The notes beneath the pieces were generated by a model that saw nothing but the letters and a program-made list of their open reading frames with translations, was not told where the DNA came from and did not search any database. Of a DNA stretch of 64,000 bases, positions 7,443-36,150 are shown in pieces; position 1 is the stretch's first letter, and each line of letters opens with the position of its first letter. The DNA is taken from sequence record PQ898602.1. One strand, 5' to 3'. Made by a program: the position numbers and the translations under genes.

Positions 7443-7573
7443 TTCTAGCAAACGTTCTTTTATATGCATGTGTTCCATTTTGTCTAGTGACATTATTCTT
7501 TGGAACTAAAGGTGGTTACTATGATACTGATAAGTATGATGGTGATGGTACTGCACATAAGGTATTAAAATGA
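7439..7573 (+). CDS. ndhP: NDH-1 complex small subunit NdhP homologue (44 aa)
   Basis: MILANVLLYACVPFCLVTLFFGTKGGYYDTDKYDGDGTAH matches the NdhP signature LFFGTxxGxYDTDxYxGxGxAH. Confidence 0.8.
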   Translation: MILANVLLYACVPFCLVTLFFGTKGGYYDTDKYDGDGTAHKVLK

Positions 7574-7655
7574 ACCACGAACAAACACAACAGAATCACC
7601 CCGAATCGGAACAACAACCACATCCAGAATCAGAACAACACGGGCACGAAGAGTC

Positions 7656-7832
7656 ATGATTCACCACGTCCAATTGTTTGTTAGACATACTATGGAAAGT
7701 CCATGGGGGATAGGTATCCTGTCCCTCGCATTGGTAGTGGTTCCTATCATTGGGATGGATTTAGTTCATAAGTATGGTTGGGAACATTGGGAACCATTTA
7801 ATAAACCATTTGACAAGTGGTTTGAGAAATAG
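7656..7832 (+). CDS. hypothetical membrane protein (58 aa)
   Basis: Hand-translated ...LVVVPIIGMDLVHKYGWEHWEPF... Confidence 0.55.
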   Translation: MIHHVQLFVRHTMESPWGIGILSLALVVVPIIGMDLVHKYGWEHWEPFNKPFDKWFEK

Positions 7833-7844: not shown

Positions 7845-7907
7845 GTTGAGAGATCAACTGCGGTGACCCCCTTGGTAGTTCAGGGTTAGCGGCGATAGGA
7901 ACTGCCA
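7845..7907 (+). ncRNA. candidate pseudoknotted leader RNA upstream of tRNA-Pro
   Basis: GTTGA-GAGA-TCAAC hairpin; stem CTGC..GACCC/GGGTT..GCGG; loop TGGTAGTTC complementary to downstream GAACTGCCA. Confidence 0.55.
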
Positions 7908-7910
7908 CCT

Positions 7911-7984
7911 CGGGTCTTAGTTCAGTTTGGTAGAACGCTGCTTTTGGGAAGCAGAGGCCACAGGTTCAAATCCTGTAGACCCGA
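7911..7984 (+). tRNA. trnP: tRNA-Pro(UGG)
   Basis: CGGGTCT/AGACCCG acceptor, CTGCT-TTTGGGA-AGCAG arm. Confidence 0.95.
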
Positions 7985-7994
7985 TTTTAGATTT

Positions 7995-8002
7995 TATAAA
8001 TA
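7995..8002 (+). promoter_or_regulatory. T4-type late promoter
   Basis: TATAAATA 11 nt before ATG 8014. Confidence 0.65.
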
Positions 8003-8013
8003 ATCTTCAACCG

Positions 8014-8190
8014 ATGGAAGTATATTCAGTGGAATATTGGCAAGAGAATTGGGACGAATTGATGGAGAGAGTGGAGAACGGAGAGACAATAGGTATAGAA
8101 AATAAAGAGACTGGAGAGAGATGCGTAATGGTTCCTGCAGATGACGAACTTCTTCGCATTTACACCGAACAAAACAACGAAGCTTCTTGA
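8014..8190 (+). CDS. small protein, Phd/YefM antitoxin-like
   Basis: SVEYWQENWDELMERVENGETIGIE...CVMVP pattern resembles the Phd/YefM fold; ORF-track start lies inside the tRNA so corrected to 8014. Confidence 0.45.
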   Translation: MEVYSVEYWQENWDELMERVENGETIGIENKETGERCVMVPADDELLRIYTEQNNEAS

Positions 8191-8215
8191 CGGATCACCC
8201 TCAACCCCTTATAAT
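8187..8215 (+). promoter_or_regulatory. sigma70-like early promoter
   Basis: TTGACG-N17-TATAAT. Confidence 0.75.
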
Positions 8216-8238
8216 ATAGAGGTCAACCACACAGGACG

Positions 8239-8454
8239 ATGACAATCGCAACTAAGTTCAAGAAAGACATTCAAACACTCCGCGCCGCCGCGGAAGGTGA
8301 TATTTTCCTTGATGTAAAGAATCCGAAACTTTTCAAAAAGGTACGCCGTTATTATGAAAACAATGGTGTAGTCTTCTCTGGTGATCCACTTGACGATTAT
8401 GAAATCATGATGGAACACATTTATAATGATCTTGAATCTGTGGAGGTGTCGTGA
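8239..8454 (+). CDS. hypothetical protein
   Basis: 71 aa ORF, SD-like AGGA; cyanophage-like. Confidence 0.65.
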   Translation: MTIATKFKKDIQTLRAAAEGDIFLDVKNPKLFKKVRRYYENNGVVFSGDPLDDYEIMMEHIYNDLESVEVS

Positions 8455-8690
8455 AAATTCTCCTAGAGCGTTTTCCGTATCGTTACGTGGAATGTGGAAC
8501 CCTAGAAAATGGGTTCCCTGACTATCGTATTCAAAAAGCCCATCATTATACTAAGAGGTACACTGACATGTATCTCCTTGATAATCAGATGCAACTTTTG
8601 ACTGCGATTGATGATTTCGAGTACACCAAATGGTTAGATCCTGAAGGTGTACCTTGTTACATCAAAGACTCGGTATCGTCTAGAAACTAG
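8451..8690 (+). CDS. hypothetical protein
   Basis: GTG start overlapping the upstream stop; 79 aa. Confidence 0.65.
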   Translation: MKILLERFPYRYVECGTLENGFPDYRIQKAHHYTKRYTDMYLLDNQMQLLTAIDDFEYTKWLDPEGVPCYIKDSVSSRN

Positions 8691-8736
8691 CCCTGGTCGG
8701 GATCCCCCCTTTCCCCTTTCTTTGGTTTACTAAATA
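8678..8736 (+). repeat. regulatory module A (CTAG-AAA-CTAG-CCCTGGT... followed by late promoter CTAAATA)
   Basis: AAACTAGCCCTGGT resembles AAACTTACCCTGGT at 10521; CTAAATA at 8730-8736. Confidence 0.45.
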
Positions 8737-8768
8737 ACTGAAGATAAAGAAGTTATCATTGTAATAAC

Positions 8769-9308
8769 ATGGCGGCAGTCTTAACTAACTCTGGTATTCA
8801 GTTTAGTGATAACACAACTTTGAACTCTAAGTATGGTATCATACCTCAAGGTTCTCAGATGTTGTTTCGTCAAAGTTCAGCCCCAAGTGGTTGGACTAAA
8901 CAAACTAGTAGTACCTATAACAATTCAGGCTGTAGAATTGTTACTGGTAATGTGGGTACTGGTGGAAACCAAGCTTTCACCAGTTCTTTTGCTCAAAGAA
9001 ACATTCAGAGTGGAGTTAGTGTTTCGGTAAACGGCGGTAACGTTCAAAACCATACACTAAGTACACCTCAAATTCCCTCCCACAACCACCCATACCAAAG
9101 ACCTAATGCGTCTAGAGGTTATCACGGCGCTACACCAAATAGTAGTGTTCCTGCCATCTATACTACTAATGGACAGAATACTGGTAACAGAGGTAGTAAT
9201 GCCCAGCACTCTCATGGTCGTAATGGATTTTCCTCTAGTGGTAACCTAGCTACCTCTATGGACTTGAGAGTAAAGTATACAGACGTTATTATCTGTAGTT
9301 TCAACTAA
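8769..9308 (+). CDS. tail-collar/short-fibre-like virion protein
   Basis: APSGWTK, HTLSTPQIPSHNH and HSH trimeric-fibre motifs. Confidence 0.6.
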   Translation: MAAVLTNSGIQFSDNTTLNSKYGIIPQGSQMLFRQSSAPSGWTKQTSSTYNNSGCRIVTGNVGTGGNQAFTSSFAQRNIQSGVSVSVNGGNVQNHTLSTPQIPSHNHPYQRPNASRGYHGATPNSSVPAIYTTNGQNTGNRGSNAQHSHGRNGFSSSGNLATSMDLRVKYTDVIICSFN

Positions 9309-9358
9309 GTTTCCTAGTTCTTAAAACTAGGTGGTGGAGTCAAACGACCCTATAAATA
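9309..9358 (+). repeat. regulatory module B (GTTTC-hairpin-TGG plus late promoter TATAAATA)
   Basis: GTTTCCTAGTTCTTAAAACTAGGTGG similar to 10558-10587; TATAAATA at 9351-9358. Confidence 0.5.
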
Positions 9359-9384
9359 GAAAAAGAATAAGATAGATTTCAGTA

Positions 9385-9975
9385 ATGGCTCTCTTTCGTA
9401 TTAGACAACAGGGAATTGACTTCCAAGACGGAAGTCGAATGACATCTCTGTTCGATATTATTCCCAAAAATACTGGAATGCTGATTCATGCTTCAGCAGC
9501 TCCTACTGGATGGACAAAGAGAACTGATAATAGTTTTAACAATGCTGCACTGAGAATTGTCAGTCAGACTGCTTGGGTACCTAACACTCAAACAGGCAGA
9601 ACTGCATTTACTCAGGCTTTTAAGGAACACCAAAAATCACACACAATTACGAGTACAATTTCGGGATTATCGGTAGGTAACCATACCCTAACAACTCCTG
9701 AGATACCTAAGCATAATCATAATATACCTAATGCTGGTAGTGGTTCTGGTGTTGCTAATAACACTCCTAGTAATCAAGGTGGACAACGTGCTGATATGAG
9801 TGACGGCACATCAGGTAACAGAGGTAGTGATAGTGCTCATAAGCATCCTGTCAGTTATACATCAGTATCAGGTCCTCTTACTACAAATCATAATATCGCC
9901 GTTAGATACGTAGATGTTATTCTGTGTAAATATAGCGGATTTGAGTACAGCGGCAATGCTGATTCTGGATCTTGA
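9385..9975 (+). CDS. tail-collar/short-fibre-like virion protein (paralogue of 8769)
   Basis: APTGWTK, HTLTTPEIPKHNH, GNRGS..HKH, V.YVDVILC. Confidence 0.6.
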   Translation: MALFRIRQQGIDFQDGSRMTSLFDIIPKNTGMLIHASAAPTGWTKRTDNSFNNAALRIVSQTAWVPNTQTGRTAFTQAFKEHQKSHTITSTISGLSVGNHTLTTPEIPKHNHNIPNAGSGSGVANNTPSNQGGQRADMSDGTSGNRGSDSAHKHPVSYTSVSGPLTTNHNIAVRYVDVILCKYSGFEYSGNADSGS

Positions 9976-9999
9976 TCAATTTCTTTTTTTATTATGTGA

Positions 10000-10503
10000 G
10001 TGATGTCACAAGATCATATAATTGTTGTAAATAACTTTCTTCCAGAAACTAAGTTTAAAAGTTTTCAAAAGTATTTTTTTGATACTTACACTGAAGAAAA
10101 TTGTTGTATCCACTATTATTCTGTAGGTGAAACGCATAGTCGTAGTGACATGTGTTTGCATTTATTAAATTATGCCTCAAATTATTTTGATCTATCCAAA
10201 TGTGTTGGATATGAATTGTGGTGTCAACACAATACCAAACCAGAATCAAAAGGTCCAAATGGTGGATGGCATTTTGACAAGGATGAGGTTCTTGAAGAAC
10301 AAACAGGAGAATTAAAATTTCCTCTGTGTTCAATAATCTATTACGTAAATGTTCAGTATCTAACTGGTGGATGTCTTTATGTTGAAGACATGAAGATTCC
10401 TCCTCAAAACAATCGACTTGTATTGATTCCTCCTGGAAAAGAACATTGTGTTGAAGAGTTTGGAGGGAAAAGAACATCTATGATAATCAATCCCTGGAAT
10501 TAG
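10000..10503 (+). CDS. 2OG-Fe(II) oxygenase
   Basis: WHFDKDE, GGCL, PPGKEHCV...R. Confidence 0.8.
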   Translation: MMSQDHIIVVNNFLPETKFKSFQKYFFDTYTEENCCIHYYSVGETHSRSDMCLHLLNYASNYFDLSKCVGYELWCQHNTKPESKGPNGGWHFDKDEVLEEQTGELKFPLCSIIYYVNVQYLTGGCLYVEDMKIPPQNNRLVLIPPGKEHCVEEFGGKRTSMIINPWN

Positions 10504-10600
10504 AGTCCTGGAATGACGATAAACTTACCCTGGTGCGGATGGGATAACTCCCGCCAGGTTTCTTGTTTCCTGTAAAAGAACAAGTGGCGTGCATGTAAAG
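10504..10600 (+). ncRNA. structured RNA, probably wcaG RNA motif (module C)
   Basis: GGTGCGGATGGG-ATAA-CTCCCGCC hairpin then CTTGTT/AACAAG hairpin and TGGCGTGCATG; lies upstream of the sugar-epimerase operon as expected for cyanophage wcaG RNAs; family name from memory. Confidence 0.6.
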
Positions 10601-10609
10601 ACCTAAATA

Positions 10610-10634
10610 AGAGAGTCACAGGACTCTCTTTTTT
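10610..10634 (+). terminator. intrinsic terminator-like hairpin
   Basis: GAGAGTC-ACAG-GACTCTC followed by T6; CTAAATA late promoter at 10603-10609. Confidence 0.65.
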
Positions 10635-10640
10635 AATGCG

Positions 10641-12233
10641 ATGAGGATACTAGCAATTCATGCAGGTCACGATTCAAATGCCTGTGTTTATGAAGAAGGT
10701 AAATTGGAAAAATATTTACTAACAGAGAGAGTTACTGGTAAGAAACACGATAGAGATATCTACTCACTATTACCTGAATTCCTATCTAGTCAAAAAGAAG
10801 AAGCAGATCGTATTTTGATTAGTGGAGAAAAAAGACTTCTAGATCTTATTGCAGAACATTATCCATTTGAAGTAGGTGGTCCAGGCCTACGTCAGACTAG
10901 AGGAGGTACGGTTGTTTTGTCTGTCGAAGGGCATCATCAACATCATGCCGATCTTGCATTTTGGAATAGTGGTTTTGATAAAAGTATTGTATTAGTTGTA
11001 GACTCTCAAGGTCATCATGTAAATAAACAAAAGAATGATCTTGTAGAATCTGAAAGCATTTATGTTTATGATAGGTTGAAAAAACCTTCGAGATTATATA
11101 AAAGTGTTATTAGATGTGTCCCCGAAGAAGGCGTAGATAGTGGTAGAAAATTTGAAAGAATTCAAACACAATATTCTCATAAGAATAATTTTGGTTTAGG
11201 ATCTTTTTATGATATTGCTGCAAAATATATTGGTGGAACTAACGATGATTGTGGTAAAGCGATGGCACTCGCTGCTTATGGTGAACCAACTCCAAAGTAT
11301 AAGTTCTTTTTGAAAGGTAATAGTTTCAATAATGAAGGTGCATTTGAACACTATGATGGTGACATTGCGAAGGGAATAACTAATGCGAATCATAAGAAGT
11401 ATGCGGATTTCTGCTACGAGACGCAGAGACAAACAGAAAAGGCATTGGGCGATCTTGTTGCGAGTTCAGTGGCCTCAACAGGTATAAAAAAAGTTTGTGT
11501 ATCTGGTGGATATGCAATGAATGTTGTTGCTAATTATTATCTAACTCAGAGATTTCCTGATGTTGATTTTTACTTTGAACCCATGTGTGGTGATAGTGGA
11601 CTATCAATTGGGTATGCAATGAGTCATTATGCTATGAAGGGTGGAGTTCCAGAACCATTAGGAACTACATTTTTACATGGAGAGGTTTATGAAAACAACC
11701 ATGTGGGTGAGGAGAAGAGTCTAAAGGACATTGCAAAACTCCTTTATGGTGATAAGTCTGTTGCAGTCTATAAGGGTCTTGCAGAAGCAGGTCAACGTGC
11801 TTTGGGTAATAGATCAATTCTGTTCAATCCATTGAATAGAAAGGCAAAAGAAATTGTTAATAAGATCAAAAAGAGAGAATGGTATAGACCTTTTGCTGCA
11901 GTTGTATTGGAAGAGGATGCTCATCTTTTCTTTGACAATGTGATTGCCAATGAATACATGACCATGTGTTTCCCAGTTAATAAAGGTCTAGGTCTTATGA
12001 TTCCTGGGGTTACTCATGTAGATAAAACATGCAGAGTTCAGACTGTTTCTAGTGGTTATCTTTATGAACTTCTAAAAGAGTTTAAAGAATTATCTGGGTA
12101 TGGTATTTTACTGAACACCAGTCTAAATCTCGCAGGTGATCCTCTGGTAGAGACTCCCGAACAAGCAGTGTCCCTTCTCAAAAACTCTAGTCTAGATCAC
12201 CTTTGGTTCGCAGATACTGGTCAAATGCTCTGA
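10641..12233 (+). CDS. carbamoyltransferase (NodU/CmcH family)
   Basis: GHDS, HHQHHA, SGGYAMN, RALGNRSIL, KKREWYRPFA, NTSLN. Confidence 0.9.
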   Translation: MRILAIHAGHDSNACVYEEGKLEKYLLTERVTGKKHDRDIYSLLPEFLSSQKEEADRILISGEKRLLDLIAEHYPFEVGGPGLRQTRGGTVVLSVEGHHQHHADLAFWNSGFDKSIVLVVDSQGHHVNKQKNDLVESESIYVYDRLKKPSRLYKSVIRCVPEEGVDSGRKFERIQTQYSHKNNFGLGSFYDIAAKYIGGTNDDCGKAMALAAYGEPTPKYKFFLKGNSFNNEGAFEHYDGDIAKGITNANHKKYADFCYETQRQTEKALGDLVASSVASTGIKKVCVSGGYAMNVVANYYLTQRFPDVDFYFEPMCGDSGLSIGYAMSHYAMKGGVPEPLGTTFLHGEVYENNHVGEEKSLKDIAKLLYGDKSVAVYKGLAEAGQRALGNRSILFNPLNRKAKEIVNKIKKREWYRPFAAVVLEEDAHLFFDNVIANEYMTMCFPVNKGLGLMIPGVTHVDKTCRVQTVSSGYLYELLKEFKELSGYGILLNTSLNLAGDPLVETPEQAVSLLKNSSLDHLWFADTGQML

Positions 12234-12275
12234 AATAAAGTATAATATATACTATGATATAATTACTCCTTTATC

Positions 12276-13322
12276 ATGAGTGAATACATTAAAAAGGCAC
12301 TTGTACTTGGTGCTGGTGGCTTCATTGGAAGTCATATGGTAAAACGCCTCAAATCCGAGGGATATTGGGTTCGTGGTGTTGACCTCAAGTACCCCGAGTT
12401 TTCTGTGACTGCTGCTGATGAGTTTGTCCAAGGAGACTTGCGGGATGTAGACTTCGTTCGCCGTTGCCTGGAGTTCAAAGGTGACAGAGGTAATTTCTAT
12501 AATTCAGTTCCTTATCAATACATTGAGCCTTTTGATGAAATCTATCAGTTTGCTGCTGATATGGGTGGGGCTGGTTTTGTCTTTACTGGCGAAAACGATG
12601 CTGATATTATGCATAATTCTGTTAGTATTAATCTGAATGTTCTTGAAGAACAACGTAAACTAAACGAATCTAAGGAAGTTAATAAGACTAAGATTTTCTA
12701 CTCTGGATCAGCTTGCATGTATCCAGAACATAATCAACTAGATCCTGATAACCCTGACTGCCGTGAAGAATCTGCCTACCCTGCGAACCCTGATTCGGAG
12801 TATGGATGGGAGAAACTCTTCAGTGAACGTCTATACTTTGCTTATAATCGTAATTACGGCATCCCTGTTCGCGTCACTCGTTACCATAACATCTTCGGAC
12901 CTGAAGGAACCTGGGAGGGTGGAAGAGAGAAAGCGCCAGCTGCAATCTGCCGTAAAGTCGCTTACCTCCCAGAGGTCGGTGGAGCTATCGAGGTGTGGGG
13001 AGATGGCCTACAGACTCGTTCCTTCCTGTTCATTGACGAATGCATTGAAGCGTCTCGACGACTCATGGACTCCGAGTTCATTGGACCAGTAAATATTGGT
13101 TCCGAAGAAATGGTTACTATCAATGAGTTGGTAGAAACCGCTGCTCGTGTTTCTGGTAAAGAAGTTACCAAGATGCACATTGACGGACCAACTGGTGTCC
13201 GTGGACGTAACTCTAACAATGACGTAGTTCGTAGAGAACTAGGTTGGGATTACTCTCAGTCTCTAGAAGAGGGTATCCGCAAAACATACGAATGGATTTC
13301 TGCACAAATCGCTAAGAACTAA
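12276..13322 (+). CDS. NAD-dependent epimerase, GDP-mannose 3,5-epimerase-like
   Basis: GAGGFIG, FAADMGGAGF, SACMYP, YGWEK, WGDGLQTRSF. Confidence 0.9.
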   Translation: MSEYIKKALVLGAGGFIGSHMVKRLKSEGYWVRGVDLKYPEFSVTAADEFVQGDLRDVDFVRRCLEFKGDRGNFYNSVPYQYIEPFDEIYQFAADMGGAGFVFTGENDADIMHNSVSINLNVLEEQRKLNESKEVNKTKIFYSGSACMYPEHNQLDPDNPDCREESAYPANPDSEYGWEKLFSERLYFAYNRNYGIPVRVTRYHNIFGPEGTWEGGREKAPAAICRKVAYLPEVGGAIEVWGDGLQTRSFLFIDECIEASRRLMDSEFIGPVNIGSEEMVTINELVETAARVSGKEVTKMHIDGPTGVRGRNSNNDVVRRELGWDYSQSLEEGIRKTYEWISAQIAKN

Positions 13323-27255: not shown

Positions 27256-29631
27256 ATGTTAAAAACCAGCATCACGGATAGAGTCGAGAGTCATCTCCTC
27301 TACACATTGGGTAAGAACCCAGATAATGCTACATCACATGACGTATACACTGCTTTGTGTTATGCGGTTCGAGACAGAATGGTTGAAAACCATTTAGTTC
27401 CCAAGTCTCCCCGTAAAGAAGTTGCGTATCTTTCTGCAGAATTTTTGATTGGACCTCAACTGAGTAACAATCTTCTCAACTTAGATATCCGCAAAGATGC
27501 TGAGAGTGCAGTTGGTAAGTTCGGATATGGTCTAGAAGAGATTCTGGATCATTCTGTTGAACCTGGACTTGGTAATGGTGGTCTAGGTAGACTTGCTGCA
27601 TGTTATATGGAATCCATGGCGACTCTGAGAGTTCCTGCCACTGGATATGGTATTAGATATAAGTATGGTATTTTCAAACAAACTATCAAAGATAACCAAC
27701 AGGTAGAGGTTACCGACAACTGGTTGCATGGTGATTGGCCATGGGAACTCTGTTACCCCGATGAGTCGGTAATGGTTGGATTTGGTGGTAAGGTAGAACG
27801 ATATGGTAATAAGGTTCGGTGGGTTCCTGAAAAGAATGTCGTCGCAGTGCCTTATGATGTTCTGCAAGCAGGATACAAGGTAGATAGTTGTGCAAAGATC
27901 CGCCTCTGGAGAGCAGACGCGATTGATGTATTTGACTTCAAAGCATTTAACCAGGGAGACTATCTTGGTTCTGTCGAGAATAGTGTGACCTCAGAGACTA
28001 TCTCTAAAGTTCTTTATCCTAATGATGGTACAGACCAAGGAAAGGAACTTCGACTGAAACAACAATTCTTCTTTGTAAGTGCTTCTCTTCAGGACATGAT
28101 TAGAAGTTTGGAAGAACGCGATCTTCCTGTGGAAGAGTTCTACAAACATTATCAAGTTCAGTTGAATGATACTCACCCATCAGTTGCAGTTGCAGAACTG
28201 ATGAGAATCCTTATGGATGATTATCACTTTGAGTGGGATCTTGCATGGGACATTACTAGTAAGTCTATCGCATATACAAATCACACACTGCTTCCTGAAG
28301 CACTGGAGAAGTGGAGTGTAAGTCTTTTCGAGAAACTTCTACCTAGACATTTGGAGATCATTTATGAAATCAACTCCAGATTCCTCCAGATCGTTAGAAT
28401 GCACTACCCTGGAGACGAGGAAACCCTTCGCAAACTTTCTATCATTGATGAGACGGGTGGTAGATATGTCAGAATGGCCAATCTTGCAACAGTCGGATCT
28501 CACCATATCAATGGTGTTGCGGCACTTCACTCAGATCTGATTACCAAGAACCTGATGCCCGAGTTCTATGATCTCTGGCCTCATAAGTTTACCAACGTGA
28601 CTAATGGTGTAACACCACGTCGTTGGTTGGCAGATTCCAACCCTGCACTTGCAGAAGTTCTTGATGAATATGTTGGTGAGGATTGGGTATCTCACATGGA
28701 TCGTCTTAGTGAATTGGAGAACTATGCAGATGATCCAGTTGTTCTTGAGAAGATCGGTGCAACAAAACTTATTGGAAAACATAAGCTTGCACAATACATA
28801 AAGAAGACACTTGGCATTTCTGTTGATCCGTCAAGTATGTTTGATGTGCAGGTAAAGAGAATTCATGAGTACAAACGACAGCATCTCCTTGCTCTATGGA
28901 TTGTGTCTCGGTATTTGTATATCAAAAATCATAAAGACGATTATGTTGTTCCACGTACAGTAATCTTTGGTGGTAAAGCCGCACCTGGTTACTACATGGC
29001 GAAAGAGATCATTCGTTTCATTTGTAATGTTGCGGAGACTATCAACTCTGACCCAGACATGGATGGGAAGTTACGTGTGGTCTTCCTACCAAACTATAGT
29101 GTGAAGTTGGGTGAGAAAGTTTATCCTGCTGCAGATCTCTCTGAACAGATCTCAACCGCAGGTAAGGAGGCGTCTGGTACTGGTAACATGAAGTTCCAGA
29201 TGAATGGTGCTTTGACTATTGGTACACTCGATGGTGCAAACGTTGAGATCCGTGATCTGGTTGGTGAAGAGAACTTCTTCCTCTTTGGTAAGACTGAAGA
29301 AGAGATTGGTCAACTATGGGCGAATGGATACAAACCTCAGTTCCATATGAGTGCTTCTCTATTTGAAGCAATCGAACTCATCAGATCGGGTCACTTCTCC
29401 AATGGTGATAAAAATGCATTCAATTCCATCATTGATAATTTGATGGAGAGTGATCCATTCTGTGTTTGTGCAGACTTCTCTGACTACTGCCGTGCTCAGA
29501 ACGTTGTGGATAACACATGGGGTAACAGAAAGGAATGGAATCGTAGATCTCTGATGAACATTGCGAGATCTGGATTCTTCTCTTCGGATAGATCTATTCA
29601 AGACTACTGCGATAACATTTGGAAAGTATGA
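27256..29631 (+). CDS. glgP: glycogen/alpha-glucan phosphorylase (GT35)
   Basis: 791 aa; SAEFLIGPQL, GLGNGGLGRLAACY, QLNDTHP, YTNHTLLPEALE, NGVAALHS, VKRIHEYKRQ, GGKAAPGY, EASGTGNMK (PLP lysine). Confidence 0.97.
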   Translation: MLKTSITDRVESHLLYTLGKNPDNATSHDVYTALCYAVRDRMVENHLVPKSPRKEVAYLSAEFLIGPQLSNNLLNLDIRKDAESAVGKFGYGLEEILDHSVEPGLGNGGLGRLAACYMESMATLRVPATGYGIRYKYGIFKQTIKDNQQVEVTDNWLHGDWPWELCYPDESVMVGFGGKVERYGNKVRWVPEKNVVAVPYDVLQAGYKVDSCAKIRLWRADAIDVFDFKAFNQGDYLGSVENSVTSETISKVLYPNDGTDQGKELRLKQQFFFVSASLQDMIRSLEERDLPVEEFYKHYQVQLNDTHPSVAVAELMRILMDDYHFEWDLAWDITSKSIAYTNHTLLPEALEKWSVSLFEKLLPRHLEIIYEINSRFLQIVRMHYPGDEETLRKLSIIDETGGRYVRMANLATVGSHHINGVAALHSDLITKNLMPEFYDLWPHKFTNVTNGVTPRRWLADSNPALAEVLDEYVGEDWVSHMDRLSELENYADDPVVLEKIGATKLIGKHKLAQYIKKTLGISVDPSSMFDVQVKRIHEYKRQHLLALWIVSRYLYIKNHKDDYVVPRTVIFGGKAAPGYYMAKEIIRFICNVAETINSDPDMDGKLRVVFLPNYSVKLGEKVYPAADLSEQISTAGKEASGTGNMKFQMNGALTIGTLDGANVEIRDLVGEENFFLFGKTEEEIGQLWANGYKPQFHMSASLFEAIELIRSGHFSNGDKNAFNSIIDNLMESDPFCVCADFSDYCRAQNVVDNTWGNRKEWNRRSLMNIARSGFFSSDRSIQDYCDNIWKV

Positions 29632-30308
29632 ACGTCTGGGTTGGGTACGATACCCGTGAACATGATGCTTTCGAGGTCTGTAGATATAGTATTCATAAAC
29701 ACAGACCCGAAGTAGAAGTACATGCAATCGAACAAAAAAATATGAGATTACTGGGTCTTTATACTAGACCTGTTGATGATCTTGCTTCGACCGAGTTCTC
29801 TCTGACTCGGTTTCTTACTCCTGCCCTATCAGAATTTAAGGGGTGGTCACTCTATTGTGATTGTGACTTCCTCTTTTTAGATGATATTCAGAAGTTGTTT
29901 GATCTTGCAGATCCTAAGTATGCTGCAATGGTAGTTAAACATGACTATAAACCAAAGGGTCGTTATAAGATGGATGGACGTTTCCAATGGTCATATCCAA
30001 GAAAGAACTGGAGTTCTCTGATTCTATTCAATAACGAACACCCAGCACATCAGTCTCTGGATGTCAACAACATGTCTCCTGTTGAGTTGCATCGATTTAC
30101 TTGGATTGATGATAAAGATCTAGGTGAACTACCTGGATGTTGGAACTGGTTGGTTGGTTATGATGATGATTCATGGCCATATAAAGATCCATCTGCACTT
30201 CATTATACCGACGGCGGTCCATGGTTTGAGGAGACTAAGGATTGCGACTACGCCGATCTATGGAACAATTCTTATGAAGAGTGGAGTAAGACTAAGATTT
30301 CTGGATAA
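29628..30308 (+). CDS. glycosyltransferase (GT8-like phage type)
   Basis: STEFSLTRFL, DCDFLF, YPRKNWSSLILFN, LHYTDGGPWF. Confidence 0.8.
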   Translation: MNVWVGYDTREHDAFEVCRYSIHKHRPEVEVHAIEQKNMRLLGLYTRPVDDLASTEFSLTRFLTPALSEFKGWSLYCDCDFLFLDDIQKLFDLADPKYAAMVVKHDYKPKGRYKMDGRFQWSYPRKNWSSLILFNNEHPAHQSLDVNNMSPVELHRFTWIDDKDLGELPGCWNWLVGYDDDSWPYKDPSALHYTDGGPWFEETKDCDYADLWNNSYEEWSKTKISG

Positions 30309-30984
30309 CTATACCTGTACGGAGATTGCATTTACATCTCCTCCTAGGTTTTGTGATTTTGAATATCAGAAAGATCAATATGTCACTGAGTCTTTTATCC
30401 GTAAAGGTTTGAAAGATTTTTACAAGGATATTCAAGCACTTAAAAAAATTTACGATACTCCTATAGACATATGTGATCCATACTTCCATCACATAGATAA
30501 CTTTCCTTCTAGGTTTACTAAGTTTGCATATCTCCGTAAAGAATTTTCTGAAGGTGTTCCCATGGAACGCCCGATATTTTATGGATCAGATTCTGATTTT
30601 CTTATAGGTTCTGGTAGATGTCTTATCGTTGGAACTTACTTCAAAGATAAGAAGATTGATATGGTAAGAGTCAATGAAAGAAAATTTATTGAGTCAACCA
30701 AAAAAATATATGACTTGATTCATAGTTTAAAGAATGAAAGTGAGGATGTCGTACTTCATGTTGAGAAGTCGGATTTTATAGATGCCTATAAGATAATGGA
30801 TATTACATTTGGAAAGTTGGAAGATTGCATAACTCGTAGTGGTGGTGTTCTTGATTTTTGGCATGAACAACCTGACTTTCAAATATTGAGAAGAAAGGTA
30901 AGGAAAATAATTCAGTCAACTAATATAGATAATATTAACCAATTGTATGATGTTCTAGATGAAATATCATTATTATTATACTAG
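30274..30984 (+). CDS. uncharacterised protein, paralogue family X copy 1 (ParB/Srx-like core)
   Basis: FTKFAYL..RPIFY..LIGSGRCLIVGTYFKDK. Confidence 0.6.
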   Translation: MKSGVRLRFLDNYTCTEIAFTSPPRFCDFEYQKDQYVTESFIRKGLKDFYKDIQALKKIYDTPIDICDPYFHHIDNFPSRFTKFAYLRKEFSEGVPMERPIFYGSDSDFLIGSGRCLIVGTYFKDKKIDMVRVNERKFIESTKKIYDLIHSLKNESEDVVLHVEKSDFIDAYKIMDITFGKLEDCITRSGGVLDFWHEQPDFQILRRKVRKIIQSTNIDNINQLYDVLDEISLLLY

Positions 30985-30985
30985 T

Positions 30986-31735
30986 ATGAAGAGGTGGCTT
31001 CAACACCACGAAGAATTTGAACCTGATAACTTTAGTGTTTCACTTTCTTATTTTGAAAATGTAAATATCCCTCAGAGGTTTTCTCTAGATTATCTTTCTG
31101 ATTTTATCGGGCAGGTTCAAAAGTTTAAGTCACTAAAGAGTTCTAAAGATGTGAAACTATCATATCTTGAAACAAAAGTCAGTATGTTTACTAAGTATCC
31201 ATACTTGTACAACTCTCTTAGAAAACACAACAAGGCTCTGTATCCAGTTGTTGTTAATTATGATCAACATACTTTATCTTCTGGAACTGGTAGACTTCTT
31301 TTAATGACGAAGTATTTTCCAGATATGAAAATAGATCTCGTCTTGAATGACCATAAAAATCCTCAATATAGAAACTATGAAGAGTTTATAGAAGAACGTA
31401 TTTTGCCCAAGTGGGATTTGGATGATACGTATTCATGTTATTCCGATTTCTTTACTGGTGAGGTGGGTGTTCCTCAACGCATGAATACATTATGTGGATT
31501 TGAGTTTGCTAAAGAAGGATATGAAAAGACATGCCCTACTAAAACATCAGCACAGAAGATACCATATGCAAGAGTAATTTCTAGTGATTATGCCATGTGG
31601 GAAAGAGTTCATTCTATACTGATGGAATCTAATCCCATGACACTTGTCCAGTATGATGAGTTGCTAGATAGAATTATATTTGATAATATTGAATATGTTG
31701 ATAGTACACAAGTTGAAGACTTATTAAAGACATGA
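30986..31735 (+). CDS. family X copy 2
   Basis: FTKYPYLY..YPVVV..SSGTGRLLLMTKYFPDM. Confidence 0.6.
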   Translation: MKRWLQHHEEFEPDNFSVSLSYFENVNIPQRFSLDYLSDFIGQVQKFKSLKSSKDVKLSYLETKVSMFTKYPYLYNSLRKHNKALYPVVVNYDQHTLSSGTGRLLLMTKYFPDMKIDLVLNDHKNPQYRNYEEFIEERILPKWDLDDTYSCYSDFFTGEVGVPQRMNTLCGFEFAKEGYEKTCPTKTSAQKIPYARVISSDYAMWERVHSILMESNPMTLVQYDELLDRIIFDNIEYVDSTQVEDLLKT

Positions 31736-32436
31736 CTACTATCGTAATTCCTGCAAGACTTAAGAGTGAAAGACTCAGAGAGAAAGCCATCGAAGACATT
31801 GATGGTCTTACTCTTATACAAAGAGTGGTAAAACAATGTTTAAAAACGCCATTTTCTGTAACTTTGGTAACTGACTCGCTCAAAATAGCAGATTCTATTT
31901 GCCCAAGGAATGTCAATATCCTTTGTTTCGATGAAAATGCATCTTCTGGGACAGAAAGAATTGCAAATGCCATAGAAATGATCCCTGGTGATGATATTAT
32001 TAATGTTCAGGGAGACCAACCATTCATTGATCCTGGTGCCATCATAGAGATGTCCGAGGTGATGGAACAGATGCAAGAGTACCAAGTTGTTACTCCTTAC
32101 AAATACTATGATCGCAGAAGTGATTATGGTGTTAGTGGTAGTAGATCGAAGGTAGTTACTAGTCAGAGTGGCAGAGTCATGTACTTTAGTCGATATCCTC
32201 TGGGAACAGATCGACTCAAGATTCACATGGGGATCTATGGTTATCGTAGAAAGTTCTTGGAGAACTTCCACACATTAAAAACCTCCCGACTAGAAGAAGA
32301 CGAGAGGTTGGAACAGATTAGATTTTTGGATAATGATATTCCAGTCTATGCTTACGAAACTAAGTATGACGTTTTTTCTGTGGATGTGCCAGAAGACCTA
32401 GAACACGCTCGAAAGATAGCTTGGGAATGTGACTAG
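31732..32436 (+). CDS. kdsB: CMP-Kdo synthetase (3-deoxy-manno-octulosonate cytidylyltransferase)
   Basis: IPARLKSERL..K, SGTERI, NVQGDQP, YFSRYP, HMGIYGY, LEQIRFL, SVDVPEDL. Confidence 0.92.
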   Translation: MTTIVIPARLKSERLREKAIEDIDGLTLIQRVVKQCLKTPFSVTLVTDSLKIADSICPRNVNILCFDENASSGTERIANAIEMIPGDDIINVQGDQPFIDPGAIIEMSEVMEQMQEYQVVTPYKYYDRRSDYGVSGSRSKVVTSQSGRVMYFSRYPLGTDRLKIHMGIYGYRRKFLENFHTLKTSRLEEDERLEQIRFLDNDIPVYAYETKYDVFSVDVPEDLEHARKIAWECD

Positions 32437-33132
32437 AGGAATCTGGGAGTGTCGGTCTGAGAGTGCCCTAGAGGGATCTGGATGCACCTCAGCAAAGAAT
32501 GCTTCTGCACCCCAGATCTTTGCACTCTGTGCAAGAGGTTGTGCATACAACCAGTTACCACCAGTTGTGGATTCTCCACCTTCCTGAGTGGAATGAGTTG
32601 AATCAAAACAAACTTTGAATCCAGCACTCTTTAGTTTATGAATGGTTCGGAAGTCAACTACCAGGTTGTCATAACCGAAAGATGTACCACGTTCGCAGAT
32701 GTAAAAGTCTTCGCAACCATATGCTTCCATATTCTCACCCAGGAGAATTGCTTGACGAGGGGACATGAATTGTCCTTTTTTGACATTGACTAATTTACCA
32801 GACTCTGCAACTGCTTGGAGCAAGTCGTTTTGACGACATAAAAATGCAGGGACTTGGTATGCGTCTACATAGTTGGATAGGATCGCAACGTCTTGTGGTT
32901 CATGGACATCAGTGATGACTTTGTAACCTGCATCACGCAGTTTTTCAAAGATCTTGATTGCAAATCTAAGTCCATGTCCACGAAAACTTTTATGACTGGA
33001 TCGGTTTGCCTTATCAAAGGATGCCTTGAAGTAGTAGTCTACACCTTCGGGTAGATTCTCAGTAATAGTTTTCGCTACTAGGAATGCATCTTCTTCAGAT
33101 TCCAGTAGACAGGGACCTGCAAATAATTTCAT
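32398..33132 (-). CDS. kdsA: Kdo-8-phosphate synthase (metal-dependent type)
   Basis: AGPC, FKASFDKANRSS, TDVHE, PAFLCRQ, VKKGQF, CERGTSFGY, FDSTHS, EVHPDP..ALSD. Confidence 0.93.
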   Translation of the reverse strand: MKLFAGPCLLESEEDAFLVAKTITENLPEGVDYYFKASFDKANRSSHKSFRGHGLRFAIKIFEKLRDAGYKVITDVHEPQDVAILSNYVDAYQVPAFLCRQNDLLQAVAESGKLVNVKKGQFMSPRQAILLGENMEAYGCEDFYICERGTSFGYDNLVVDFRTIHKLKSAGFKVCFDSTHSTQEGGESTTGGNWLYAQPLAQSAKIWGAEAFFAEVHPDPSRALSDRHSQIPLVTFPSYLSSVF

Positions 33133-33155
33133 TCTATGATAGAATACTTTCATTA

Positions 33156-33164
33156 ATTATACCA
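33156..33164 (-). promoter_or_regulatory. extended -10 promoter candidate for kdsA
   Basis: TG-G-TATAAT on the minus strand, 24 nt upstream of the ATG at 33132. Confidence 0.45.
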
Positions 33165-34060
33165 TGATGGCATCATATTTTCCAGAGTACAACAGACTAA
33201 GAGAGTGTTGGGTTGGTCGTGCATATGATTCTTCACTCGTAACTGATACATTTGTTAAAGATATCCTTGATGAAACCGAAGAGGATCTGGTAAACTTTAG
33301 TCAAATGTTAAGAGATTTGGAAGTCGAAGTCAAACGACCGACTTACAAGAATCCTGATGTTACTCGGAAACCACAACTTCTACACGCACGGGATCACCTC
33401 CAATATCTTAACGGCAAACTTTATGTCGGTCCAAGGTATGAAGACAATATTGCTGATTGGTTGGAGTTGCTTGATGGTAGAACTCCTTTTGTCACTCTGG
33501 ATAATCTATGTGCGCCTTCTGTAGTTCGTGCCGACAGAGTTTACTTTGATGCGGTATCATGGACACGTAAACGTTTTGAGTATTTTCAACATGGGAATCC
33601 TGATCTGCCTTGTGTTTTTGAACGACTCTCTTCTCGCGATTTTAACATCGAACGTCATACAGATGGTGTATTCTGTGTAGTCAAGGAAGGTGTAATCATC
33701 TCTACTCCACAAGGGCGTAACCTAGAGTATCTATTCCCTGAGTGGGATATCTTATATCTCGACCAGAATACTCAAGATCTCAATGATATGGCGAAGACCA
33801 AAGGTAAGTTTATTTGGTCTCCAGATCAGATCCCTGATGATTACAGGGACTGGGTGGGATATTCACCTGAGACTTTCTTTGATGTCAATGCACTTGCTGT
33901 CGATGAGAAACACTTCATGTGTACTCGATACAATAAACAGGTGTTCGATTTCCTGAAGAAACATAAGGTGGAACCAATTATCGTACCCTTCCGTCATAGA
34001 TACCTATGGGATGGTGGACTCCATTGTATGACTTTCGATTTCATTAGAGATGTTAGTTAA
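33164..34060 (+). CDS. amidinotransferase family protein (copy 1)
   Basis: RLRECWVGR, HARD, RHTDGVF, FDVNAL, GGLHCMT (catalytic His and Cys). Confidence 0.8.
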   Translation: MMASYFPEYNRLRECWVGRAYDSSLVTDTFVKDILDETEEDLVNFSQMLRDLEVEVKRPTYKNPDVTRKPQLLHARDHLQYLNGKLYVGPRYEDNIADWLELLDGRTPFVTLDNLCAPSVVRADRVYFDAVSWTRKRFEYFQHGNPDLPCVFERLSSRDFNIERHTDGVFCVVKEGVIISTPQGRNLEYLFPEWDILYLDQNTQDLNDMAKTKGKFIWSPDQIPDDYRDWVGYSPETFFDVNALAVDEKHFMCTRYNKQVFDFLKKHKVEPIIVPFRHRYLWDGGLHCMTFDFIRDVS

Positions 34061-34745
34061 TAAACAAGGAATAGTCGATGCAGAGTTGCAGACGTTTCCG
34101 TGGGAACATATTTTAGTTGATAATTTTATTGAAGAAAATACCTTCAATGAACTTCTGAAGATTGCAGATCATATTAAAAGTATTGAATCTACCTTCAAAG
34201 AATCTATTCATTATGTACCAGAATATAATGAATGTGTATTTAATTTGAAACACCTCATTCAGATTGGTGTAGATCCAAAGGTTGTTGAACTTTATGCAAA
34301 AGTTCTGGATGATATCAAGGAACTGAAAACTACAATATGGGATAAGTTTTCTGATCATCGGCATTGTGAAGAGGATAGGACTTATTGTAATGGTCATTTA
34401 AACTGGACAGGTTCTGGTGGTTACTATCACATTCATCCAGATTCCCATACTAAAAGTGTAAGTATTATTGTTTACTTTGATCCTGACGAAAATAACACTA
34501 CGACTCTTTGGGGTAAACCTGGAGTCGAATCTACATGTGTTAGACCTGAGTGGAAAAGGAACAGAGCCGTTGTATTCTGCCCTAACAAATCCACTTGGCA
34601 CTCTGTAGATACTACACATAGTAATAGGATGACTCTTGCATGTTTTATTGAGTTTGTTCCTGAAGATAAAAGTTCATACGGAAAGTTCACTGTAGAAAAT
34701 ATCAGATTCAGTAAAGATTACTCAGTAACTCAACTTAGAATCTGA
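34050..34745 (+). CDS. 2OG-Fe(II) oxygenase-like
   Basis: PWEHILVDNF, HIHPD, EWKRNRAVVF..TWHSV..R. Confidence 0.75.
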   Translation: MLVNKQGIVDAELQTFPWEHILVDNFIEENTFNELLKIADHIKSIESTFKESIHYVPEYNECVFNLKHLIQIGVDPKVVELYAKVLDDIKELKTTIWDKFSDHRHCEEDRTYCNGHLNWTGSGGYYHIHPDSHTKSVSIIVYFDPDENNTTTLWGKPGVESTCVRPEWKRNRAVVFCPNKSTWHSVDTTHSNRMTLACFIEFVPEDKSSYGKFTVENIRFSKDYSVTQLRI

Positions 34746-35470
34746 TGAAAGTTCGTTGTATATACGAAGAGAATATAAGAAATAGACTTCCTAATGTATA
34801 CATACCCATTCAGAAGTTCTGTAAGTTTCAATATTTGCGTGATGTAAATCTGAATAGTGCAAAGTATGATCGTATATTTGATCTATCCTTTGATGAGTTC
34901 AAACGTAATGTGAATTTCATTGCACAGAGAAAAGAGAACTGGAATAACTATAGAGTTTCATCAATACTTAAATTACCCATTCTATACAGAGACATGATGA
35001 ACTATGGGAAGTGGAGAGACCCTATCGTCTTCACCCCATATGAACATACTATACCCGATGATGGTTCTGGAAGAACATTGGTAAGTAAGATTTTCTTTCC
35101 AGACATGCCTTATGATCTTTTGTATTATGAAAAGGAACATGATGATCTGAAATCCTTAAAAGAACTGATTAATATCTTTCATGATAATGTTAATCCAGGT
35201 TCCTACAAAGTCATTGATGTTTATTACAAGTTATATGGTGACTTTGCATATAGTAGACAGATTGAGTTTTTGAAAGAAGAGAAAGAAGTAAAAGAATTTT
35301 GTGGTAGTTGGACTTTGGATATTGTTCAGGAGTTGACTTCTACCCTATTCAAAGAAATGATCAGAAAGATTCGTAGTGATCCGCCTCAGACAGATGATGA
35401 TTATATTGAGTTATTAAAAGACCTTGTAAAGATGGATTATAAATTTAATAGTAAGTCTATATCTTATTGA
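34745..35470 (+). CDS. family X copy 3
   Basis: LKLPILY..DPIVF..DDGSGRTLVSKIFFPDM. Confidence 0.6.
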   Translation: MKVRCIYEENIRNRLPNVYIPIQKFCKFQYLRDVNLNSAKYDRIFDLSFDEFKRNVNFIAQRKENWNNYRVSSILKLPILYRDMMNYGKWRDPIVFTPYEHTIPDDGSGRTLVSKIFFPDMPYDLLYYEKEHDDLKSLKELINIFHDNVNPGSYKVIDVYYKLYGDFAYSRQIEFLKEEKEVKEFCGSWTLDIVQELTSTLFKEMIRKIRSDPPQTDDDYIELLKDLVKMDYKFNSKSISY

Positions 35471-36150
35471 AAATGTTCTACAACATTGATAGTATTCTCA
35501 AATCTGAACTTCGTAAGGAACCTTGGGAACATAAAGTTGTTGATAATTCAATCAATCCAGAGGTCTTCAAGACTCTCTCCCTTATTCCTAAGATGATCCT
35601 GAATAAGAATAGGAGAGGGACACCTTTGATGAGTAAGTTCATTCATGAATCCAAGGTGGATTATGAGGGTGCTGTTATGGATCTTGAAGAACTACTTAGA
35701 GTGGGTCTTGCGGAAAATATGGTAGAACTTCTTTATGATTGTGGTAAGTCTTTGTTTGATGCTAAAGATCAGATCTTAGAACAATTCTCTTCTTACCAGA
35801 AGTCTTCTGATGGAGAATATCTTTTTGATGTAAACTTGCAGTTTTTATTCCCAGGAAATGAAGTGAGTTTGCATGATGGTGGGTACAATAGGACTCTTTC
35901 ATGTGTTACTTACCTGAGCCCAGATATACAATCGGGAACACGGCTCGGTGATTCAACAGAAGTTGAATGGAAGAAAAATAGATCAATAATCTTTGCCCCA
36001 CATAAAGGAGTGACTTGGACTTCTTATGAAAATCCCTATGAGATGCAGTCGTTCCGATTTGTCATCAGTACTTTTGTTGAATTTGTAGAATATAAGAATA
36101 TCGAATTTTCTACTGGTAAGAAGTTTAAATTCTTGACTGGTTCCAAATGA
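35467..36150 (+). CDS. degenerate 2OG-Fe(II) oxygenase-like paralogue of 34050
   Basis: PWEHKVVDNS, EWKKNRSIIF; HxD reads HDG and the distal His reads T. Confidence 0.65.
   Translation: MKMFYNIDSILKSELRKEPWEHKVVDNSINPEVFKTLSLIPKMILNKNRRGTPLMSKFIHESKVDYEGAVMDLEELLRVGLAENMVELLYDCGKSLFDAKDQILEQFSSYQKSSDGEYLFDVNLQFLFPGNEVSLHDGGYNRTLSCVTYLSPDIQSGTRLGDSTEVEWKKNRSIIFAPHKGVTWTSYENPYEMQSFRFVISTFVEFVEYKNIEFSTGKKFKFLTGSK

Follow-up and report, generated by a model that had tools for sequence, protein, structure and literature searches.

Convergent kdsB and kdsA genes with dual-coding tails in cyanophage S-SCSM2R and a clade of marine viral relatives

The Kdo genes kdsB and kdsA of Synechococcus phage S-SCSM2R point toward each other and share their last 39 bp. 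Judging from sequence comparisons, this layout is old and common to a marine viral clade, and it is not a recent acquisition of S-SCSM2R. The explanation that we favor, and regard as probable when taken as a whole, is that a conserved convergent pair, created by one flip, travels in a mobile cassette and that kdsA is served by a promoter of its own. According to this explanation, kdsB and kdsA would be an old convergent pair that sits in a mobile Kdo glycan cassette found in marine T4-like cyanophages, carried as a unit and inserted either way round into differing phage backbones. The unusual orientation of kdsA is a stable trait, inherited with a Kdo cassette that is specific to viruses and widespread in surface-ocean viromes.

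The gene pair and its shared 3' ends

The origin of the DNA was established by a DNA search in which positions 30900-34200 gave a 100% match to Synechococcus phage S-SCSM2R (PQ898602.1; 244,186 bp; host WH7803). The window, i.e. the whole stretch of 64,000 nucleotides that was analyzed, is the final 64 kb of this record, and a window position equals the record position minus 180,186. In the annotation of PQ898602.1, KdsB is ORF264 on the plus strand and KdsA is ORF265 on the minus strand. The S-SCSM2R paper reports kdsA and kdsB as a first for a cyanophage (PMC12801897), and term searches of its text gave no mention of the orientation, promoters or strandedness of the two genes. An AMG list in a survey of surface-ocean viromes names kdsA and kdsB once (PMC10653327). 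A search of the literature on cyanophage promoters and antisense transcription found nothing bearing on the kdsB/kdsA locus. The gene pair and the enzyme assignments are already published; to these the present analysis adds the overlap, the revised start codon, the conservation across the clade and the mosaic breakpoint.

The kdsB gene (31732-32436, plus strand) encodes a CMP-Kdo synthetase of 234 aa. The assignment agrees with the record annotation and comes from Pfam CTP_transf_3 (9e-34) and from the NCBIfam subfamily model NF003952, against which the protein scores 200.6 bits (cutoff 193); it falls under the cutoffs of the stricter NCBIfam equivalog models. The kdsA gene encodes Kdo-8-phosphate synthase, with 277.6 bits against the NF003543 equivalog (cutoff 242) and positions 19-263 of the 273-position profile covered. 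With the revised start described below, it occupies 32398-33132 on the minus strand and encodes 244 aa. In an alignment of 11 clade members of KdsA, residues C8, H180, E215, D226, K36/K41, N43 and R44 and a PAFL-RQ block are all invariant; these are residues of catalytic type. The Cys/His/Glu/Asp set would be that of the metal ligands of the metal-dependent class, as in the Aquifex enzyme.

The initial annotation had placed kdsA on the minus strand and had described a 39-nt tail overlap with kdsB that left both C-termini intact, and both observations are borne out. The open reading frame runs from 33153 down to 32398 on the minus strand, and kdsA is likewise a minus-strand gene in the record. 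The overlap occupies 32398-32436, the codons of the two genes lie in register, and the same 39 bp encodes, on opposite strands, the final 12 sense codons and the stop of each gene. The NCBIfam profiles extend to residue 242 of 244 in KdsA and to residue 230 of 234 in KdsB. Since the profiles end only 2-4 residues from the ends of the proteins, both C-termini are genuine enzyme sequence.

A gene that opposes the local direction of transcription might be a decaying, unexpressed remnant. This is very improbable for kdsA, which has an intact frame and scores above the NF003543 equivalog cutoff, and in which 90-odd columns are invariant across the clade, the Cys/His/Glu/Asp set included; contigs from RNA libraries also cover the gene.

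The initial annotation had called kdsA the only credible minus-strand gene in 64 kb. It is the lone sizeable one, and the eight longest other minus-strand ORFs in the window have no Pfam match; the record annotates one further minus-strand CDS in the window, a 30-aa hypothetical at 7565-7657. This small CDS, ORF227, is squeezed in between ndhP and ORF228 and is of doubtful reality. Outside the window, the record contains a four-gene minus-strand block, ORF19-22 (7856-12657 of PQ898602.1), so that coding in the S-SCSM2R genome is not strictly single-stranded. The products of ORF19-22 are a gp53-like baseplate wedge protein, a tail-tube assembly protein, a DNA end protector and a TnsA-like endonuclease.

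A convergent layout in viruses, a co-directional one in cells

Relatives of the pair were found among uncultured viruses. A DNA search of 50,697 phage records for near and distant matches returned the source record only, and no KdsA relative turned up in any cultured cyanophage when proteins were searched. IMG/VR and public assemblies provided 14 viral contigs with KdsA 70-99% identical to that of S-SCSM2R, and a further KdsA group, 55-60% identical, came from a protein search and its contigs. The convergent, overlapping arrangement of kdsB and kdsA is present in 16/16 non-redundant relatives with KdsA at least 55% identical. The initial annotation had called for a comparison of orientation in related phages, and this comparison yielded a single convergent layout in all 38 loci that hold both a clade KdsA and kdsB, with an overlap of 36, 39, 45, 60 or 69 nt. 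All of these lengths are multiples of 3, and therefore the codons of kdsA and kdsB always lie in the same register. In 12/12 aligned sequences the kdsB stop occupies a single column, facing the invariant Leu233 codon of KdsA, and the part that varies among relatives is how far kdsA reaches into kdsB. The clade with the in-register overlap extends down to 55% identity in KdsA and 48% in KdsB. Several further glycan-island genes of S-SCSM2R also occur in the subclade with longer overlaps, which argues that its contigs, too, are cyanophage-like.

In a KdsA tree of 73 rows, the 16 non-redundant convergent rows lie on one side of one branch, so placed that a single change of state accounts for the layout. 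The tree is the product of a quick search, and the convergent clade itself is only 85% supported (SH-aLRT 85), with the value rising to 99 when the lone cellular-looking sister of the clade (L025) is included. A separate group of IMG/VR contigs (L062, L064, L067, L071, L075, L088, L096, L111 and others) carries a KdsA homologue within an ORF of about 460-480 aa; this is about double the normal length and suggests a fusion with another domain.

These comparisons bear directly on the history of the locus. The initial annotation had raised a recent inversion or insertion, and the status of kdsA as the lone sizeable minus-strand gene in 64 kb could be taken as a sign of such an event in S-SCSM2R, or of an assembly error. 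Either is extremely unlikely, given that identical junctions recur in 20 or more independent metagenome contigs spanning several lineages, as well as in RNA-library contigs, and that both junctions are coding-exact. Misassembly was ruled out on the grounds that many independent metagenome assemblies reproduce both junctions. Inversion does survive as an account of the past of the gene, but the event is not recent and was not an insertion of kdsA by itself, since the in-register overlap is found clade-wide.

In an invertible DNA switch of the Hin/Gin or Mu G type, recombination would take place at the palindrome in the kdsA leader or at repeats flanking the segment. The palindrome is not conserved. 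A 16-nt inverted repeat, imperfect (81%, 13/16) and with arms at 32430-32445 and 33096-33111 that bracket most of kdsA, could be cast in this role, but one arm lies inside the kdsA coding sequence, and a flip would destroy both C-termini. No recombinase gene lies nearby, the loci show a single orientation in 38/38 cases, and no reads supporting two orientations within one population were seen. The marks of Hin/Gin and Mu G-type switches, namely flanking repeats, a recombinase and both orientations, are thus not what is seen at kdsA, and the probability of a switch is close to nil.

The preferred history, an old flip followed by inheritance of the convergent pair, gains from a comparison with cellular genomes. 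Among the matches listed from 185,579 species (one genome each), the best cellular KdsA is at most 48% identical, and none of the listed cellular sequences appears to belong to the KdsA clade. Among the best 80 cellular loci, kdsB lies within 4 kb of kdsA in 24; it is upstream and co-directional in all 24, and convergent in none. Cellular Kdo operons of the form kdsB-kdsA-kdsD-kdsC, e.g. the Clostridia-type loci L027-L030 (kdsB-kdsA-SIS-HAD, all in one direction), resemble the viral loci in that the two enzymes are adjacent and in the same left-to-right order, with KdsA 45-47% identical. These operons have their genes in one direction, joined head to tail, with genes for a SIS-domain isomerase and a HAD phosphatase next in line; the viral clade has an inverted kdsA and 3' ends that overlap, and neither kdsD nor kdsC adjoins the pair. 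The cellular gene order is thus preserved in the viral clade apart from the flip of kdsA, and a single old inversion at the base of this clade is the most economical history. The convergent layout most likely arose once, by the flip of a single gene within a cellular-type kdsB-kdsA operon, in the ancestor of the virus-only KdsA clade.

Orientation, allele exchange and possible antisense coupling

The surroundings of the pair are much less constant than the pair. The flanks of kdsB/kdsA differ in every lineage, and homology to the closest relatives stops at about 31930 and about 34052. In S-SCSM2R, L049, L040/L054 and L034, kdsA is the lone gene opposed to the backbone. In L039 the genes opposed to the backbone are kdsB and, separately, a GT8-like gene, while kdsA follows the backbone direction; in L022, L031 and L033 the opposed unit is the pair formed by the GT8-like gene and kdsB; and in L018 two gene runs meet convergently at the kdsB/kdsA pair. 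What stays constant across these loci is that kdsA and kdsB converge on each other, and not that kdsA opposes operon read-through. In S-SCSM2R, kdsA would simply be the gene left facing against the backbone. An earlier suggestion, that operon read-through and kdsA transcription oppose each other and thereby time Kdo synthesis, is weakened by the several lineages in which it is kdsB that opposes the backbone and kdsA that follows it.

The GT8-like gene is itself a recurrent companion of the pair. In S-SCSM2R it corresponds to ORF261 (29628-30308, plus strand), a GT8/GT24-like glycosyltransferase and a candidate user of CMP-Kdo, and homologues 41-44% identical adjoin kdsB (L022, L031, L033) or kdsA (L009/L039, L010) in relatives. 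The positions of these homologues include 5629-6219 in L022, 9415-10071 in L031, 6978-7622 in L033 and 4098-4718 in L039.

The joint between the two genes is also a point of mosaicism. A recombination breakpoint at 32437-32445, just past the kdsB stop, separates a divergent kdsB allele from a near-identical unit consisting of kdsA and ORF266. Against L002, L004, L006 and L008, DNA identity is 50-80% through kdsB and steps up to 92-98% past about 32437-32445; the high identity spans kdsA and ORF266, which together are about 95% identical in DNA to these wild relatives, and collapses at about 34052. The proteins reflect the same step, with KdsA 99% identical and KdsB only 59%. The head-to-head kdsA and ORF266 have therefore moved together from phage to phage in a recent exchange, one breakpoint of which lies at the joint where both strands are coding. 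Discordance of a similar kind in a second subclade (L018-L031: KdsA 89%, KdsB 64%; L018-L022: KdsA 85%, KdsB 79%) hints at repeated exchange of alleles between kdsA and kdsB, and a sliding identity comparison of L018, L022 and L031 gave no crisp breakpoint. Under the preferred explanation, alleles have been swapped between phages at the kdsB/kdsA overlap. The sharp step in identity neatly illustrates how a module is exchanged at such a dual-coding joint within the hypervariable glycan islands of cyanophages.

Transcription of the locus can be considered in light of public RNA libraries. Part of the stretch is present in 20 listed sequencing runs belonging to 12 studies, and six of these runs are RNA libraries; four metatranscriptomes were used, as Logan contigs only, which are unstranded and possibly include carried-over DNA. 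The RNA-library contigs cover kdsB, kdsA and ORF266 of S-SCSM2R-like and L002-like phages, and one unstranded metatranscriptome contig spans the kdsB/kdsA tail junction. No terminator-like site was found on either strand between the two genes or just beyond them, and the overlap shows no conserved RNA structure, with a consensus fold energy of about 0. A shared terminator or processing hairpin at the overlap was rejected on these same grounds. The lack of a terminator and of conserved structure makes read-through in both directions plausible.

In bacteria, convergent overlapping pairs with cis-antisense 3' ends include the "excludon" type. The kdsB/kdsA pair resembles these pairs in that the genes lie on opposite strands and their transcripts necessarily overlap at the 3' ends; it differs in that the overlap codes for protein on either strand and links enzymes that serve the same pathway. 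The overlap could on this model be a regulatory device, in which antisense 3' ends or read-through, by polymerase collision or by processing of RNA duplexes, couple or alternate the two Kdo enzymes. Convergence is indeed kept while the orientation relative to the backbone and all flanking genes change, read-through is to be expected where no terminator-like site is present, and the metatranscriptome contig crosses the tail junction. We nevertheless consider a regulatory device unlikely. The overlapping coding ends lock the genes together without any need for regulation, no RNA structure is conserved in the overlap, mutual repression of two enzymes of one pathway has no obvious benefit, and the RNA contigs, being unstranded, may include carried-over DNA. 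A broader proposal, that the overlap is a selected joint at which antisense messages balance or sequence the Kdo enzymes and at which conserved dual-coding DNA serves as a site of homologous recombination that shuffles kdsA and kdsB alleles among cyanophage lineages, is judged equally unlikely. Antisense coupling, if functional, would alter the understanding of phage gene regulation, which would otherwise be unchanged.

The start of kdsA and its divergent neighbor ORF266

The record places the kdsA start at the ATG at 33153, giving 251 aa. An upstream alignment of the close lineages reveals that this ATG is not conserved: relatives have GTG, GTA or GTC in its place, and those of the L002-L008 group also have an in-frame TAA before the next ATG is reached. 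This second ATG, at 33132, is universal in the close lineages, and a database cluster of 98%-identical proteins is called at 244 aa. The alignments show that KdsA is best read as a protein of 244 aa from the ATG at 33132 and not of 251 aa, a reading that corrects the published start codon.

Upstream of the revised start lies an extended -10 element, TGGTATAAT (33156-33164, minus strand), the likely promoter of kdsA. The initial annotation had proposed a candidate extended -10 here, and the proposal has gained strength: the site is the best promoter-like sequence in 30500-35500, with 10/12 hexamer matches plus the TG, no better sigma-70-like match occurs within the 5 kb, and it is conserved across the close lineages. 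The perfect TGGTATAAT, comprising both TG and -10 hexamer, lies 23 nt before the ATG at 33132, and 4/4 close lineages retain TGnTATAAT (with TGG, TGC or TGA) at a distance of 21-23 nt upstream of the second ATG. The eight specified bases of TGnTATAAT are intact in four lineages that have two different neighbor genes, while the leader between box and start diverges; L009/L010 retain the box although their divergent neighbor is another gene. Occurrences of TGNTATAAT are not enriched in the window (6 found, 3.3 expected), so that the weight of the promoter call lies in its conservation. Conservation of the -10 box could in part reflect constraint on the start region of the divergent gene. A weak -35-like hexamer, TGGAAA (33179-33184, minus strand), is located 17 nt upstream of the -10 within the ORF266 coding sequence; it is probably dispensable, and L009/L010 have no -35-like hexamer at the 17-nt spacing.

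Transcription from this box is predicted to start about 7 nt past it, near 33149, which would leave the ATG at 33153 outside the mRNA. In the RNA libraries, one contig has an end at 33151, only 2 nt away from this position, and a contig from another run bridges 33006-34083 and so crosses the proposed start region, both contigs being unstranded. We think it reasonably likely that the kdsA box is a working host-type extended -10 promoter. Under the preferred explanation, host sigma-70-type RNA polymerase would transcribe kdsA alone from 33164-33156, and translation would begin at 33132; in any case the box provides a defined, testable candidate promoter for a host-surface-modifying gene. In these respects kdsA recalls phage "morons", which sit among backbone genes under promoters of their own, as a host-derived accessory gene with what appears to be its own host-type promoter, independent of the surrounding unit. 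It differs from them in that no terminator was found, and in that it shares 39 bp of coding sequence with its pathway partner and travels with that partner. Upstream of the opposed gene runs in the second subclade there are loose AT-rich -10-like boxes with no shared motif. The T4-late-type sequence TATAAATA occurs as five exact boxes in the window (7995, 9351, 23188, 36910 and 54025), all on the plus strand, a number not above chance.

A second candidate extended -10, TGATAGAAT (33137-33145, plus strand), lies inside the kdsA leader and faces ORF266. Its equivalents are TGTTATACT in L002, TGTTAAACT in L005 and TGTTATAAT in L011, with the TG and T1, A2, A4 and T6 of the hexamer kept; this pattern, TG-n-TA-n-A-n-T, is found in S-SCSM2R, L002, L005 and L011, and is poor in L009/L010, where the neighbor is another gene. 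The element at 33137-33145 may be the ORF266 promoter and may form, together with the kdsA element, a compact two-way promoter between start codons 34 bp apart.

The right arm of a perfect 7-1-7 palindrome (33131-33145) coincides with this candidate plus-strand -10 box. The initial annotation had noted the palindrome and suggested an operator or a breakpoint scar. The palindrome is present in S-SCSM2R, but neither role was retained: it is absent from all relatives, the window contains five perfect 7-1-7 palindromes where composition-matched random sequence gives 5.7 +/- 2.3, and shuffled sequences fold as well as its RNA does (z = 0.16).

The divergent partner of kdsA, ORF266 (33167-34060, plus strand), is co-inherited with it, always head to head, and is 96-98% identical in L002-L008 and 76% identical in L011-L014. 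No Pfam or NCBIfam match was found for ORF266, which is labeled "glycine amidinotransferase" in the record. It is a distant protein of the amidinotransferase fold, with weak PDB matches to arginine:glycine amidinotransferase (E = 0.002). ORF266 also matches ORF309 of the same phage (24% identity, E = 9e-15) and contains a C-terminal G-G-L-H-C-M-T motif.
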